IMG/VR virus record: IMGVR_UViG_3300006931_000029 | Location: 160,955-224,954 of that record | DNA length: 64,000 nucleotides | Strand: one strand, 5' to 3' | Shown: positions 9,690-14,985 of the stretch, in pieces | How positions within the stretch are numbered: position 1 is the first letter of the stretch | Layout: every line of letters begins with the position of its first letter | Position numbers and translations under genes: made by a program | The notes under the pieces: generated by a model | Database searches by the model: none | What the model was told of the DNA's origin: nothing | What the model saw: only the letters and a program-made list of their open reading frames with translations

Positions 9690-10583
9690 TTACGGAATTA
9701 TCGTGACGGTTATTTTCTGACTGACAGTGGAGCCTGCGGTGTTTGAGACCGAGCACATATAGACACCACCGTCGGAGGCCTGCGCAGATGCGACGGAAAA
9801 GACTTGGTTCGTTGATCCTTGGATTGGCGTTCCGTTCTTGAACCATTGGAAAGAAAGTGGTGGTGATCCTTCAGAATCGGCTGATAGGGTGAGGAGTTGT
9901 CCTACCTTAACTGTCGTAGCCAAGGCGAGTTTCACTGATCCGGCTGGTGCAAATGCAACGTAGACAAATTTGGTGCCATCGCTAGCAAGGAGTTGTCCTG
10001 CGTGATTGGCAGGATCAGGAAGTCCTGAAACACCCGGAGGTCCTTGCGGGCCGACGTCACCCTTCGGTCCTTGTACGCCGATGCCTGGCAATCCCGGGTC
10101 GCCTTGATCGCCTTTCGGACCTTGCGGGCCTGGAGGTCCTGGAATTCCGGTAGGCGGAGGAGGTGGCGTTACACCAATCGACACCGACGAACCAACCTTC
10201 GTCTTCAGCTTTGCACCATCTTCCATGGTGATGGTAACTCCAACCAAGGGCGAGAGATTGTTCGACCCGAGTGTAGCGCTGAATCCTCCGCTCACGTTGT
10301 TCGCGACGACGATCGCAATACCGCCGGCCGATTTGACTACGTTAATCTTGTCAAGGACACTGTTGACACCTCGATCAAGCAAAACAATTTTGCCAGCCCA
10401 CGCAGCGTCTGCCGATTGGCCGAGTCCGCCGTAAACCAAAACAGCTGTGGTCGCAACCTTCGGCGTGCCAGTGACGTAGACGGCAGGGTATGCGTCAGGC
10501 GTTGCAAAGACGTAGACAGCGTCTGCGGCCGCCAAAAACGGTAACAGAAATAGGAATCCCAAGAAAACGGTAAGGCGCTTCAC
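9690..10583 (-). CDS. Secreted PA-domain + collagen + Ig-like protein
   Basis: Signal peptide; GKIVLLDRG...[18 protein letters not shown] (PA domain); GPP/GPQ repeats; [13 protein letters not shown]...[15 protein letters not shown] (Ig I-set). Confidence 0.8.
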
Positions 10584-11144: not shown

Positions 11145-11426
11145 TCATGGCGTAATTGTGAACTCAGCTTTGAGCACGGCCGTAGGTTTTATCACTTCGA
11201 CCGTGATGACACCATAGCGCACAGCCAACCTCACAGCGTCGGCTAGGCACTTTGCATTGATCTTTTTGTAGAGGTGACCGCGCTGAGTCTCTATAGTCTT
11301 CGTGCCGACGTCGCAGACGGTTGCTATCTCCTTTGCCGATTTTCCATTCGCCATCATCTCCCAAATTTGGTACTCACGTTCCGTGATCTTGAATCCATTC
11401 ACGGTAACTTTAGAGTAGACGGTCAT
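11145..11426 (-). CDS. LuxR-family HTH regulator (stand-alone)
   Basis: ITEREYQIWEMMANGKSAKEIA...KTIETQRGHLYKKIN...LAVRYG. Confidence 0.85.
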   Translation of the reverse strand: MTVYSKVTVNGFKITEREYQIWEMMANGKSAKEIATVCDVGTKTIETQRGHLYKKINAKCLADAVRLAVRYGVITVEVIKPTAVLKAEFTITP

Positions 11427-11935: not shown

Positions 11936-12376
11936 TCACGCTAGTGAATCTTGGGGTTTCCAGGTGGTAGGACGAGAGCACCAAGCTCGGTGCATAAAAT
12001 CCTTGTTGAATCCTTTGAAGAGATACTTTGGGTCCATGTCCAGCATCTTCGCCGTGACGTTGATGACCCGAGTCGTGTTGGCTTTTGAGTCACCGAACGC
12101 ATGAGACACAAGCCAAATGGCGTGGACAATCTTCATCTTCCGCTTCGTCTCTTCCACCACCGCCGTCGAATTGACGTACGTTGGATCGTACTCCCAGTCC
12201 CACTCTTGGCAGAGGTAGTCGATTGCTGCACACTCCTTGTCCGACATCTTGTACTCGGTGTCGAACGGATAGATCATGAACTTCAACTCGCCGAAGTTCT
12301 GGGTTTCTTCAAGGAACGACCATGCCTCACCGTCGTCCTTGAACATTCTGCGGAGGTGATCGGGTGCTTGTGGCAT
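11936..12376 (-). CDS. Hypothetical protein
   Basis: 146-aa ORF, MPQAPDHLR...AIDYLCQEWDWEY. Confidence 0.6.
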   Translation of the reverse strand: MPQAPDHLRRMFKDDGEAWSFLEETQNFGELKFMIYPFDTEYKMSDKECAAIDYLCQEWDWEYDPTYVNSTAVVEETKRKMKIVHAIWLVSHAFGDSKANTTRVINVTAKMLDMDPKYLFKGFNKDFMHRAWCSRPTTWKPQDSLA

Positions 12377-12377
12377 G

Positions 12378-12778
12378 TCAGAGATTGGTTAGCGAGAAAC
12401 GACTCGACTTCTTCTTTGGCGGCGGTCTTGAGTCTTGTTCGAACTTGATCTCTTGGTCGATGGCGGCTGCTGAAAACGTAACGCCTTTACGGCGACGGGG
12501 CACAACTGTCTGCGATCCTTGATGACCCTGGGGTCCTGAGTACTGAACTCCTTGATGCCCTCCTCCAGAGGATTGGGAACCGGCAGAACCGCCGCCTCCG
12601 CCACCTCTGACGGCAACATAAGACACACCCCAGTTAAGTCTAGGGGCATGCGACCCAGAATCAAGCACCACGAAATCGTCACCATTTGCGCCCATCGGGC
12701 CAACAGGTCCGACGCAACCGGTCGGCCCGATGTTACGCGCGAATGGATTTGGATTCCTGTGCAGTTGGCCCCTTAGAC
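12378..12778 (-). CDS. Gly-rich ORF, probably the -1 frameshift extension of 12773-12973
   Basis: The frame is open back to the slippery site. The collagen-like GPTGCVGPVGPMGANG begins upstream of the first ATG (12695). Confidence 0.6.
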
Positions 12779-12973
12779 GAAAGGGCGCACAAGGACGTCG
12801 ACGAGGGCGAGGTCAGTTGGGAGTTTATCTTTGTTGTCGAGCGTGGCTTTCATCGCAGCGGCACGGTCGTCAGTGGCGATGAAACAATACGGCGGAACGA
12901 TGAGCACCTCGGGTGTACCTTCTTCGCGCTGTTTGTGGGTAGGTTTCTGAACGATAGCGACTTCGTAGAGCAT
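12773..12973 (-). CDS. Small protein ending VLVRPFV
   Basis: 66-aa ORF with GTTCT 10 nt upstream. It ends over a C-CCT-TTC slippery heptamer. Confidence 0.8.
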   Translation of the reverse strand: MLYEVAIVQKPTHKQREEGTPEVLIVPPYCFIATDDRAAAMKATLDNKDKLPTDLALVDVLVRPFV

Positions 12974-13318: not shown

Positions 13319-13363
13319 GAGCAGAAGAATTCGTTTACGTTTTAACAGACTAGTAGGTAGTCT

Positions 13364-13633
13364 ATGAAACCGATCCAACTCGTCGAGGCTCTGCTAGGTG
13401 ACACGCAGCCAGTGATCGTGCAAGATCGTGTGATCCCGAACGGCGACATGGTTTGTCCTCACTGCAAGGAAAGCATCCACGAAAAGGGACTAGCGTACCG
13501 AGATGGTCAACACATCCACGGTGCCTGCGGCGGTACGGTGACTCTTCCTCCACCATCAGCGACCGAGCTGAAGTGGCTCGACCAATTCAAATCACAGGTC
13601 TCGAGTCTGAAGAATCCGCCGGCGAATATCTGA
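13364..13633 (+). CDS. Zn-binding small protein, candidate late/internal virion protein
   Basis: N-terminus MKPIQLVEALL, CPHC...HGAC, and GTAGGTAG directly upstream. Confidence 0.6.
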   Translation: MKPIQLVEALLGDTQPVIVQDRVIPNGDMVCPHCKESIHEKGLAYRDGQHIHGACGGTVTLPPPSATELKWLDQFKSQVSSLKNPPANI

Positions 13634-13787
13634 TTTCGATCCAGAAGCCGATCATCGGCAATGGACAGACATAGAGGCGCTTGGCCTTCTTGTCGTAGTA
13701 GGCGCCAATCCACAGGTCGTACCACCGAAAGAAGGTTTCGACGGTGAGTTCCCAATCGCAGCGATAAGACGAAGGCGTTTGCACGGA

Positions 13788-14385: not shown

Positions 14386-14985
14386 TTAATGTCCACCTGA
14401 CGAGAACGCCTTCACCAAGTCCAGATATGGTTGCGACATCTTGTGAGCTGCCGTCCTCGACGCCCAATCGATGGCCGTGTCAAGACTCATGCTCATGTTT
14501 CGAATAGCGTATGCAGCAGCGACAGCCCCGGTCCGGTCTGTACCGTTCAAGCAGTGAACGTAGATTTTCTTCGCGCTCATCTCATTCAGTCGGCTGATGA
14601 AATCGATCAGCCCTTCGAAGTCGTAGGACTGTGCCGAAGGACCGGTGACGTCCGGCGTCGTACCGCCTTCGATCGGCCACCAACAGAGAAGCCTGTTTTG
14701 ATAAGGCATCGCGTGCATCAAAGCAGGGTCCCACTGAGGATCGAGAAACGGCGGAGCACTACGGGTGAACTTGCAGGCGTAGGTGCGCTCGAGAACCTCT
14801 AGCAGGTCAACCTCGCCGGTGTTATCGGTCAGACAGATTTGAATCAAACCGGATTTCTCAGAACCGATCAACGAATCGAGCTGAGCAAAGTCGACTTCTC
14901 GGTCCTTGTTCAGTGGGAAGTTGCCACGCCAAAGATTGCCATGGATTTCGGAGACGCGAGCCGGATCAAGGATGGGATTGTTCAT
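14386..14985 (-). CDS. Cys-based tyrosine/dual-specificity phosphatase
   Basis: YVHCLNGTDRTG is the CX5R P-loop. N-terminal NLWRG. Confidence 0.85.
   Translation of the reverse strand: MNNPILDPARVSEIHGNLWRGNFPLNKDREVDFAQLDSLIGSEKSGLIQICLTDNTGEVDLLEVLERTYACKFTRSAPPFLDPQWDPALMHAMPYQNRLLCWWPIEGGTTPDVTGPSAQSYDFEGLIDFISRLNEMSAKKIYVHCLNGTDRTGAVAAAYAIRNMSMSLDTAIDWASRTAAHKMSQPYLDLVKAFSSGGH

Follow-up and report, generated by a model that had tools for sequence, protein, structure and literature searches.

The locus lies on the minus strand of a 64,000-nt stretch of a virus record (IMG/VR IMGVR_UViG_3300006931_000029, positions 160,955 to 224,954), the whole of which is referred to below as the window. 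The ORF and its translation give a 0-frame gene for a 66-aa protein at 12773-12973, the 3' end of which reads GTG CGC CCT TTC GTC TAA. This end contains the slippery heptamer C CCT TTC (12785-12779) in X XXY YYZ form, and its phase was verified, CCT and TTC being 0-frame codons. The 0-frame stop TAA (12775-12773), which would end the short isoform, stands one codon 3' of the heptamer, a placement found in 41/54 family representatives. The -1 frame coding region occupies 12378-12785, where 135 sense codons counted from CCC precede a TGA (12380-12378); the frame is stop-free from 10 codons 5' of the heptamer to this TGA, and the trans-frame product was computed at 63 + 135 = 198 aa. The first ATG, GTG or TTG of the -1 frame is the ATG at 12695, a -1 frame CUG (12764-12762) is preceded by TAAGGGG (12775-12769), and the ATG of the next gene (12376) is 1 nt beyond the TGA. 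The original prediction, made from the sequence alone, had described the gene end, the heptamer and its phase, a 7-nt spacer, the complementarity of two downstream stems, the open -1 frame to 12378 and the first ATG at 12695, and all of these held on re-check.

The 66-aa protein, the predicted -1 product and their genomic setting

The 66-aa protein is a member of a large phage family, represented here by 110 cluster representatives and hence by at least 110 sequence clusters, in which the C-terminus reads ...VLVRPF(A/V). Family members occur in phages of soil, rhizosphere, sediment and groundwater that range in size from 40 kb to 735 kb, as well as in prophages of at least three bacterial phyla. 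The domain is predicted by AlphaFold to be a compact beta-alpha-beta-alpha-beta unit (pLDDT 96.6). Curated libraries contain no entry for this family: Pfam, PHROG and NCBIfam gave no match for the 33 family members tested, nor for either piece of the window gene. Fold searches with the confident 66-aa model brought up nothing in PDB or BFVD at E < 0.1, and a PDB profile search was likewise empty. In the Protein Atlas, the domain led only to unnamed viral clusters and the extension to disordered-protein look-alikes. Resemblances of the model to PurS, phi29 p6 and a ribosomal protein were weak. No DNA similarity to GenBank phages was found, and tblastn found the family only in two copies of one 735-kb uncultured phage. 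Neither the family motif nor this site was mentioned in any paper in the open-access literature searched.

The -1 product carries six collagen-like Gly-X-Y triplets (12675-12728), which straddle the ATG at 12695, four of them upstream of it. The closest relative, L003, has 9 such triplets and the 735-kb phage relative ~22; the latter match the Scl1/Scl2 models with an E-value of 6.5e-10, below the curated cut-offs of those models, and the six triplets of the window gave no Pfam Collagen match at E <= 0.01. A Gly/Ser-rich low-complexity linker (12558-12605) is followed by the window version (12459-12548) of a C-terminal module that is conserved in -1 products, V.Y..AP.G..[ST][YF].[AS]..L. Here the module consists of VQYSGPQG (12548-12525) and VTFSAAAI (12482-12459), with a 14-residue insert between them. 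By the strict pattern the module is present in 40/55 -1 products, with near-variants in most of the others, and in 0/55 in the other two frames. An extra 26-residue tail with a basic KKKSSRFSL end (12381-12458) follows the module in both the window and L003; the 735-kb phage has a comparable one, and most family members are without it. In every locus whose gene calls were inspected (window copies, L009, L010, L013), the calls show an 'empty' gap of 190-430 nt behind the short gene, and for this reason protein databases lack the long isoform.

The neighbours in the window are small hypothetical proteins, a Pam3_gp59-like protein, a LuxR-type HTH protein and a dual-specificity phosphatase, and those in relatives include primase, helicase, dUTPase, RecT, Gp157, pol III delta', methylases and terminase. 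The setting is one of replication, recombination and early genes, not of tail tube and tape measure genes. No conserved neighbour gene was found, 87/89 flanking proteins being singletons.

Conservation of the heptamer and selection on the -1 frame

A heptamer in one genome alone is not beyond chance, because a C-terminal Arg-Pro-Phe by itself yields it with a chance of ~1 in 16 at even codon use; its family-wide invariance is far beyond chance. Loci were fetched by N-terminal peptide patterns (80 metagenome, 4 viral and 3 genome loci), which put no selection on the C-terminal codons; codons were counted over 55 representatives that are <85% identical. Comparison of homologues ending VRPF, the check put forward with the original prediction, bore it out: CGC CCT TTY is kept in 55/55 representatives and is present in all 98 loci inspected. 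Arg65 is CGC in 55/55 and Pro66 is CCT in 55/55 family representatives, and elsewhere in the same genes 36% of Arg residues are encoded by CGC and 13% of Pro residues by CCT. All four codons are used in three other conserved Pro columns, the adjacent Val, Leu and Ala codons vary freely across the representatives, other Arg columns vary too, and the Z position of the heptamer shows C/T variation only. Three MAG or prophage copies also keep CGC CCT TTY. The 735-kb uncultured phage, at ~31% identity, retains CGC CCT TTT TAA with a 190-codon collagen-like -1 ORF. The two-frame layout is found in ~95% of roughly 100 diverse family loci.

In an Arg-Asn-Phe variant, on which two independent assemblies agree, the codons CGA AAT TTC form the heptamer A AAT TTC, which is followed by an 8-nt spacer and a 7-bp hairpin. 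Four bases are altered together, and the heptamer pattern is restored rather than its sequence; A AAT TTC is a compensatory re-creation of the slippery signal. The generality of the site is weakened by three loci with either an imperfect heptamer or an interrupted -1 ORF: L108 ends Arg-Ser-Phe and has only a U_UUU tetramer, L112 ends Arg-Arg-Phe with C CGT TTC and has only a U_UUY tetramer, and the -1 frame of L029 contains stops. No further Arg-Asn-Phe or Arg-Ser-Phe relatives were found in viral contigs.

Two explanations that leave out the ribosome bear on these data. The invariant CGCCCTTT could be some other cis signal, such as a protein- or RNA-binding site, part of a promoter or terminator, or a packaging or nuclease site; eight invariant bases amid a variable background could be any cis element, and the gene sits in variable early regions without a fixed neighbour. 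Against this, the invariant bases match the X XXY YYZ phase exactly, with Z only C or T, the variant changes four bases yet keeps the pattern and not the sequence, a conserved -1 ORF and a conserved product always follow, and no Rfam match was obtained. We consider this explanation highly improbable. Alternatively, RNA polymerase might add or drop a base at CCCTTT, and such transcriptional slippage at this point would lead into the identical frame. Productive transcriptional slippage requires a run of ~8 or more identical A or T bases, however, and the site has runs of merely 3 C and 3-4 T. With tRNA re-pairing, by contrast, both the A AAT TTC variant and the strict need for the X XXY YYZ phase are consistent. 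Almost no room is left for this alternative either.

In 52/54 representatives the -1 frame runs for 55 codons or more without a stop (median 72), and the +1 frame does so in just 11/54 (median 23). In 14/54, the start of the next gene has a 4-nt overlap with the -1 stop. Between the window and L003, the heptamer and the following 27 nt are identical, the 21- and 9-nt indels 5' of the first ATG are in frame, and all indels in the -1 region are multiples of 3. Differences fall on the three codon positions as 4/3/11, and pN/pS in the -1 frame is 0.31 overall and 0.22 over the 26 codons that separate the first ATG from the 0-frame stop. Across 19 related pairs, 18 of them computable, pN/pS in the -1 frame was 0.17-0.96, with 15 at or below 0.66. 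The -1 frame, including the part 5' of the ATG at 12695, is under purifying selection, as is the 0 frame. The inference of the original prediction that Gly periodicity before the first ATG suggests translation upstream of it is supported by the pN/pS of 0.22 and the in-frame indels there. Independent initiation at 12695, which would have refuted the prediction, is contradicted by the same evidence together with the Gly-X-Y repeats themselves.

The main rival to frameshifting is that the locus holds two separate genes, the downstream ORF starting at the non-canonical CUG (12764-12762) behind the TAAGGGG, which is Shine-Dalgarno-like, by termination-reinitiation at the UAA, or at the ATG at 12695. 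In its favour, TAAGGGG lies 4 nt from an in-frame CUG and this arrangement is identical in L003, the first 49 nt past the stop are unusually unstructured in the manner of an initiation site, and L108 likewise has TAAGGGGGAGGTGG directly after its stop. This reading leaves unexplained both the synonymous invariance of CGC CCT TTY in 55/55 representatives and the re-creation of X XXY YYZ in the Arg-Asn-Phe variant. Moreover, the first ATG, GTG or TTG in the -1 ORFs of 54 representatives is scattered over codons 3-69. Separate initiation from TAAGGGG is further weakened because this phage shows no Shine-Dalgarno enrichment, an SD-like 4-mer being present at 16% of 81 gene starts vs 22% in the background. 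A start at the ATG is opposed by the upstream periodicity, indels and pN/pS described above, and this ATG is also buried in a 12-bp stem. We therefore regard two separate genes as very improbable.

Some family members carry the domain and the module joined in one frame (P0005/L102, P0006 and L068), and these are natural in-frame long forms. In L102 and L068 the long form is the 0-frame product, and the short form arises from the -1 frame. Folding back of the C-terminal module on the domain was considered and is unsupported, the extension being predicted as disordered in the AlphaFold model of the natural long form P0006.

The existence of single-ORF long forms (P0005, P0006, L068) and the proneness of short homopolymer runs to indels might be taken to favour a further explanation, namely an artefact or a decaying gene, in which an assembly or sequencing indel at CCCTTT split one ORF, or a recent frameshift mutation left a pseudogene. 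The junction of the window is, however, the same in at least 5 independent assemblies of this phage, with no indel in contigs from other runs. The prevalence of the two-frame layout in the family and the purifying selection on both frames also speak against it, and we treat it as excluded for practical purposes. What the comparison shows directly is the signal and its phase, its family-wide nucleotide invariance, the compensatory variant, the selected -1 frame and the natural in-frame long forms.

RNA structure and stimulatory elements

Two stems can be drawn downstream of the heptamer, and the original prediction had suggested that their competition could tune the isoform ratio. The 5' arm of the long-range stem, GGGCCAAC (12771-12764), starts at +8, after a 7-nt spacer, and is complementary to GTTGGCCC (12704-12697). 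The 5' arm of the competing local hairpin, CATCGGGCCGAC (12732-12721), starts 46 nt after the heptamer and is complementary to GTTGGCCCGATG (12704-12693), forming a 12-bp stem with one G-U pair included. This 3' arm, which contains the ATG at 12695, is shared, its partner being either 12764-12771 or 12721-12732. The competing hairpin wins in a 120-nt fold, and it is too far from the heptamer for a classical stimulator role. The long-range stem has a z-score of -1.66, with 10/200 shuffles folding as well, and is not clearly beyond chance. The GGCC core of the GGGCCAAC arm forms pairs across most of the ensemble in the window as well as in L003, but with different partners, and no equivalent of the GTTGGCCCGATG arm was found in L003. 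Over the 49-60 nt that directly follow the heptamer, predicted folding is weaker than that of shuffles in both sequences (z +1.1 to +1.5). Covariation of the stem could not be assessed, two sequences being too few for any test. The proposed tuning by two competing stems is thus unsupported, given the 3' arm missing in L003 and the poorly structured 49-60 nt.

Stimulatory elements are more evident in the family at large. Downstream structure with z < -2 was found at the site in 16/55 representatives vs 2/55 and 5/55 in control windows; a crude count of hairpins (dG <= -10) did not separate the site from the controls, whereas the z-score comparison did. An SD-like 5-mer occurs upstream in 29/55 representatives vs 0-12 in controls. 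In many relatives an SD-like GAGGU precedes the site by 8-9 nt, a hairpin follows it after 5-8 nt, or both are present. The GAG GTN found upstream in many relatives corresponds to GAC GTC in the window, and neither a local hairpin nor an upstream Shine-Dalgarno-like element was found there. With neither element evident, the efficiency of frameshifting in this genome may be low, and any stimulator acting here is a matter of inference only.

Proposed mechanism, precedents and significance

Taken together, the data make it very likely that C CCT TTC is a conserved programmed -1 ribosomal frameshift site that yields 66-aa and 198-aa isoforms, although there is no protein, ribosome-profiling or reporter evidence and the one RNA run examined had no coverage of the locus. 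The homologue comparison supports the original prediction of such a pair, with a long form of ~198 aa, outside the tail-chaperone context. Slippage itself, and its rate, are inferred only. In the proposed mechanism, most ribosomes would read CGC CCU UUC GUC UAA and release the compact 66-aa alpha/beta protein. In a fraction of ribosomes, the P-site tRNA-Pro and the A-site tRNA-Phe would slip one base back in tandem, from CCU to CCC and from UUC to UUU, respectively. Reading would then continue in the -1 frame (CGU CUA AGG ...) for 133 further codons, the UAA now being out of frame. The resulting 198-aa isoform would consist, in order, of domain residues 1-65, a flexible spacer that is Gly-rich and partly collagen-like, the terminal module and the basic tail. 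The roles of both isoforms are likewise inferred. Our best guess is that the short form would supply the bulk copies of a self-associating or ligand-binding domain, and that the long form would be a minor subunit tethering the assembly to a partner via its C-terminal module, in a ratio set by the frameshift rate.

The nearest phage precedent is the gpG/gpGT frameshift of tail assembly chaperones (Xu, Hendrix and Duda 2004; cited in PMC4276943 and PMC10885494). In that system, a -1 shift late in a small phage ORF produces a minor isoform with a C-terminal extension, and the arrangement is conserved across very divergent phages. The present case is similar in the position of the heptamer near the 3' end of a small ORF, in an extended minor isoform that shares the N-terminal domain, and in the wide conservation of recoding. 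It differs in that the family does not lie between tail tube and tape measure genes, its neighbours varying by phage, and has no match to any chaperone family. The domain has just 65 aa, and the extension is a disordered spacer with a ~20-residue module rather than a folded T domain. Furthermore, one heptamer sequence is used throughout the family, whereas chaperone slippery sites vary.

Frameshifts at the 3' end of capsid genes, as in T7 gene 10A/10B and the major head protein of Lactobacillus phage A2 (reference 41 in PMC10885494), offer a second comparison. In these genes the shift takes place at the last codons and the extension is carried by a fraction of the copies. The likeness lies in a shift within the last codons of the gene and a 50-135-residue extension on some copies; however, the 66-aa domain has no capsid fold (no HK97-like or other match), and most loci are outside the structural module. 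The tau/gamma frameshift of bacterial dnaX (treated in PMC4066793) resembles our case in giving two isoforms with a common N-terminal part at a set ratio. Many family members have both stimulators, and L102 and L068 have the dnaX polarity. Unlike in dnaX, the shift in the window leads to the longer product, at C CCU UUC rather than A AAA AAG; neither stimulator is evident there, and there is no homology. As to the heptamer itself, C CCU UUU of West Nile virus supports efficient -1 shifting experimentally (PMC11797035), and H_HH.U_UU.Y heptamers are among the most efficient class in E. coli (PMC4066793). These belong to the same slippery class as the window site, but were studied in a eukaryotic RNA virus and in synthetic reporters.

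Outside tail chaperones, transposases and a few capsid genes, phages seldom have conserved programmed frameshifts. The open-access literature searched gave no bacterial or phage gene family that relies on an invariant C CCU UUY, and the case is likely to be both undescribed and widespread as an instance of programmed frameshifting.

A bolder reading is doubtful, though it is not excluded. Under it, the system would be a new and very widespread phage 'two-isoform adaptor', in which an oligomer of the 65-aa domain incorporates a rare long isoform whose flexible arm, ending in the ~20-residue motif V.Y..AP.G..TYSA..L, docks on a conserved host or virion target. If this were true, the arm would be triple-helical and collagen-like in large phages, and the invariant heptamer would be a dnaX-like stoichiometry device in an accessory early gene of phages of many bacterial phyla. 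The lineages in which polarity appears inverted, with the long form in the 0 frame and the short form in the -1 frame, would then indicate a need for both products.

Returning to the frameshift itself, the comparative proof is unusually clean, resting on complete synonymous-site invariance, a compensatory heptamer, a conserved trans-frame product and natural fusions. The family, with members that do and do not have hairpins and SD-like elements, is a new natural system in which to study C CCU UUY slippage in bacteria. The frameshift also offers an annotation rule for phage genomes and a way into the study of an abundant but uncharacterised protein family.

A conserved heptamer at the Arg-Pro-Phe codons

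The 66-aa ORF of the window, which derives from a phage contig of 224,954 bp (IMGVR_UViG_3300006931_000029), lies at 12973..12773 on the minus strand and ends GTG CGC CCT TTC GTC TAA. The original prediction was that this end holds an X XXY YYZ heptamer, at which a -1 programmed ribosomal frameshift (PRF) outside the usual tail-chaperone context gives a short and a long protein. The sequence observation was confirmed: the heptamer C CCT TTC (12785-12779, minus strand) is in phase with the ORF, and the -1 frame is free of stops from 10 codons upstream of it to the TGA at 12380-12378 (minus strand). Counted from CCC, this frame comprises 135 sense codons, and a trans-frame product of 198 aa is predicted. 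In E. coli, the H_HH.U_UU.Y class of heptamers has one of the highest intrinsic efficiencies (PMC4066793).

An exhaustive profile-free search matched the 66-aa protein to 110 cluster representatives, nearly all 62-73 aa long and with their own C-terminus reading ...VLVRPF(A/V). DNA was collected for relatives at 60-69% identity and for 4 viral, 80 metagenome and 3 genome loci; the metagenome and genome loci were retrieved with N-terminal peptide patterns, so that the C-terminal codons are free of selection bias. Arg-Pro-Phe was encoded by CGC CCT TTC or CGC CCT TTT in 98 of the 98 loci inspected. Among representatives less than 85% identical (n = 55), Arg was CGC and Pro was CCT in 55/55 each, while elsewhere in the same genes CGC accounts for 36% of Arg codons and CCT, the rarest Pro codon, for 13%. 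All four Pro codons occur at three other nearly invariant Pro columns, and the Val, Leu and Ala codons adjoining Arg-Pro-Phe vary freely. The chance expectation of this codon invariance is ~1e-13 even when only ten independent lineages are assumed.

Evidence for translation of the -1 frame

The closest relative of the window locus, L003, is a 2.6-kb soil contig with the same gene order and a 66-aa protein 94% identical to that of the window. The heptamer and the next 27 nt are identical in the two, and the L003 -1 frame is likewise open, with no canonical start before an ATG within its run of Gly-X-Y triplets (9, vs 6 in the window). The window triplets (12728-12675, minus strand, -1 frame) span both sides of ATG 12695, the earliest ATG, GTG or TTG of that frame, and translation of the region upstream of this ATG had been suspected. 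This part held, as inferred from sequence comparison: the indels between window and L003 in this stretch (21, 9, 3, 6, 6 and 18 nt) are all multiples of three, differences from the 0-frame stop to the first ATG number 4/3/11 at -1-frame first, second and third positions, and pN/pS is 0.22 over that interval and 0.31 across the entire -1 ORF. Initiation solely at ATG 12695 is contradicted by the in-frame indels and low pN/pS upstream of it. L003 also carries an extra 56-aa ORF (963-1133), absent from the window, between its -1 ORF and the Pam3_gp59-like gene.

Across the family, the -1 frame is open for at least 55 codons past the heptamer in 52/54 representatives (median 72), compared with 11/54 for the +1 frame (median 23). 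In every locus looked at, gene callers left a gap of 190-430 nt over the -1 stretch. A 4-nt start/stop overlap is the usual packing of real genes; the -1 stop overlaps the start of the next gene in this manner in 14/54 representatives, and in the window a single base separates it from the next ATG (12376). Among related pairs, -1-frame pN/pS, computable in 18 of 19, ranged from 0.17 to 0.96 and was 0.66 or less in 15 of these. The -1 products are variable and of low complexity, with a common terminal module, approximately V.Y..AP.G..[ST][YF].[AS]..L. Its strict pattern was found in 40/55 representatives, and most others have near-variants; reading the same DNA in its two remaining frames gave no match. 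In the window product the module reads VQYSGPQG ... VTFSAAAI and is followed by a 26-residue tail with a basic end, a feature shared with L003. The proposed homologue comparison thus came out in favour of the frameshift, with the heptamer nucleotides conserved and the -1 frame open.

Family loci that depart from Arg-Pro-Phe or from the usual layout bear on the model. In L110 and L111, Arg-Asn-Phe is encoded by CGA AAT TTC; four bases differ, yet an X XXY YYZ heptamer (A AAT TTC) is restored. Downstream of it come an 8-nt spacer and a 7-bp hairpin, and the -1 ORF has 63 codons with Gly-Tyr-Ser repeats. The two assemblies differ once, synonymously in the -1 frame. Only a U_UUU tetramer remains in L108 (Arg-Ser-Phe), and Arg-Arg-Phe in L112 gives C CGT TTC; in each case the -1 ORF is still long and closes with the module. 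In L029, stops interrupt the -1 frame before the module, and in L070, through a linker deletion, the module lies past the stop in the 0 frame; these layouts might reflect gene decay, chimeric assembly or another kind of recoding.

Natural single-frame long forms show that the domain and the module do occur together in one genuine protein. P0005, encoded at L102, reads CGC CCT TTG on in the 0 frame to ...MTCYNASSLNL, its -1 frame stopping after 12 more codons; P0006 has the C-terminus ...AVTYSAMSLIGHNP; and L068 is also a single-frame fusion. At L102 (1690-1755) and L068 (266-580), where the 0 frame encodes the long form, the heptamer is retained (C CCT TTG and C CCT TTT). To judge from sequence alone, a -1 shift there would yield the short form, a reversed polarity that is the same as in dnaX.

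Alternative explanations and stimulatory elements

A TAAGGGG string (12769-12775, minus strand), G-rich and Shine-Dalgarno (SD)-like, overlaps or lies immediately after the 0-frame stop in the window, in L003 and in L108, a 56%-identical relative in which it is lengthened to TAAGGGGGAGGTGG just past the stop. The string is unexplained; its retention could perhaps reflect either the Leu-Arg-Gly that it encodes in the -1 frame or a role at the RNA level. For part of the product, separate initiation at CUG 12764, downstream of the string, remains possible, but it would explain neither the heptamer invariance nor the compensatory A AAT TTC variant. It is also disfavoured by the lack of enrichment of SD-like motifs at the starts of 81 minus-strand ORFs of the window (4-mers 16% vs 22% background, 5-mers 5% vs 9%); the host probably starts translation without an SD sequence. 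No tRNA genes were found within the 64 kb window. Assembly error or pseudogene formation is excluded, since the layout recurs family-wide and in at least five independent assemblies, and contigs from other runs show no indels. Transcriptional slippage is unlikely, given base runs of just 3-4. Canonical -1 PRF, inferred from sequence comparison, is very likely the mechanism, which makes this a new instance of a known one. The predicted short/long pair is supported, without protein, ribosome-profiling or reporter evidence.

Family-wide, folding of the 60 nt past the site is stronger than that of shuffled sequences (mean z -1.07), with z < -2 in 16/55 compared with 2/55 and 5/55 in control windows, and hairpins usually begin 5-8 nt downstream. 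Frameshifting can be stimulated by SD elements upstream (PMC4066793), and 29/55 carry an SD-like 5-mer 6-17 nt before the site (control positions 12, 1 and 0). The upstream Glu codon is GAG in 20 and GAA in 4, while other Glu columns of these genes favour GAA. This bias is only suggestive, being confounded with conserved Glu/Gln-Val residues. The window and L003 have neither an upstream SD-like element, the codons there being GAC GTC, nor a local downstream hairpin (z +1.1 to +1.5 over the first 49-60 nt).

The original prediction further held that two competing stems tune the product ratio. The complementary arms are present, and the stem pairing 12771-12764 with 12704-12697 forms in an 89-90-nt fold; however, its z is only -1.66, a competing 12-bp hairpin beats it in a 120-nt fold, and its 3' arm has no counterpart in L003, where the GGCC core pairs with other Gly-Pro codons. 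The stems therefore exist as complementarity without evidence of selection, and the tuning claim is unsupported.

Protein architecture, genomic setting and breadth

The 66-aa domain is predicted to adopt a beta-alpha-beta-alpha-beta fold (pLDDT 96.6), with no significant match in fold or sequence searches; the P0006 extension is predicted to be disordered and not to dock onto the domain. Flanking genes vary by locus (87/89 singletons). Most nameable ones are genes for replication, recombination, nucleotide metabolism or accessory functions, with an occasional portal or terminase gene, and a tail tube gene paired with a tape measure gene was never found among them.

Genes at the window locus are all on the minus strand, so the plus-strand 89-aa gene called in sister contigs (13364-13633), opposite minus-strand ORFs at 13362-13784, looks doubtful. 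The gene just downstream (11936-12376, minus strand; 136 or 146 aa depending on the caller) has a weak Pfam match to Pam3_gp59 (E 1.5e-5, just below the gathering score). Also on the minus strand are a 199-aa dual-specificity/tyrosine phosphatase-like protein (14386-14985; DSPc E 1.3e-9), a nearby LuxR/GerE-type HTH protein (11145-11426), and a second collagen-like protein of 297 aa (9690-10583), which combines a signal-like N-terminus with a Gly-X-Y run and PA and C-terminal Ig domains (Pfam).

The family occurs on 40-50 kb contigs, in the 225-kb phage of the window and in a 735-kb uncultured phage. The junction of the last reads GTG CGC CCT TTT TAA, and its 190-codon -1 ORF contains SYSTSIGL and ~22 Gly-X-Y triplets matching streptococcal collagen-like models, though below the curated cut-offs of these models. 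Copies in MAG or prophage DNA of Latescibacterota, Gemmatimonadaceae and Gallionella all (3/3) have CGC CCT TTC and a module-bearing -1 ORF. No cultured phage of the GenBank collection carries the family, and the literature searched mentions neither family nor site.

In the proposed architecture, a folded domain would be joined through a spacer, flexible or collagen-like, to a terminal peptide module, and the short form would be the default product. By inference only, this layout suggests an assembly built largely from short forms, in which the long form may serve as a minor 'armed' subunit. The loci represent a large, undescribed recoding family, unusually well supported and outside the tail-chaperone context.
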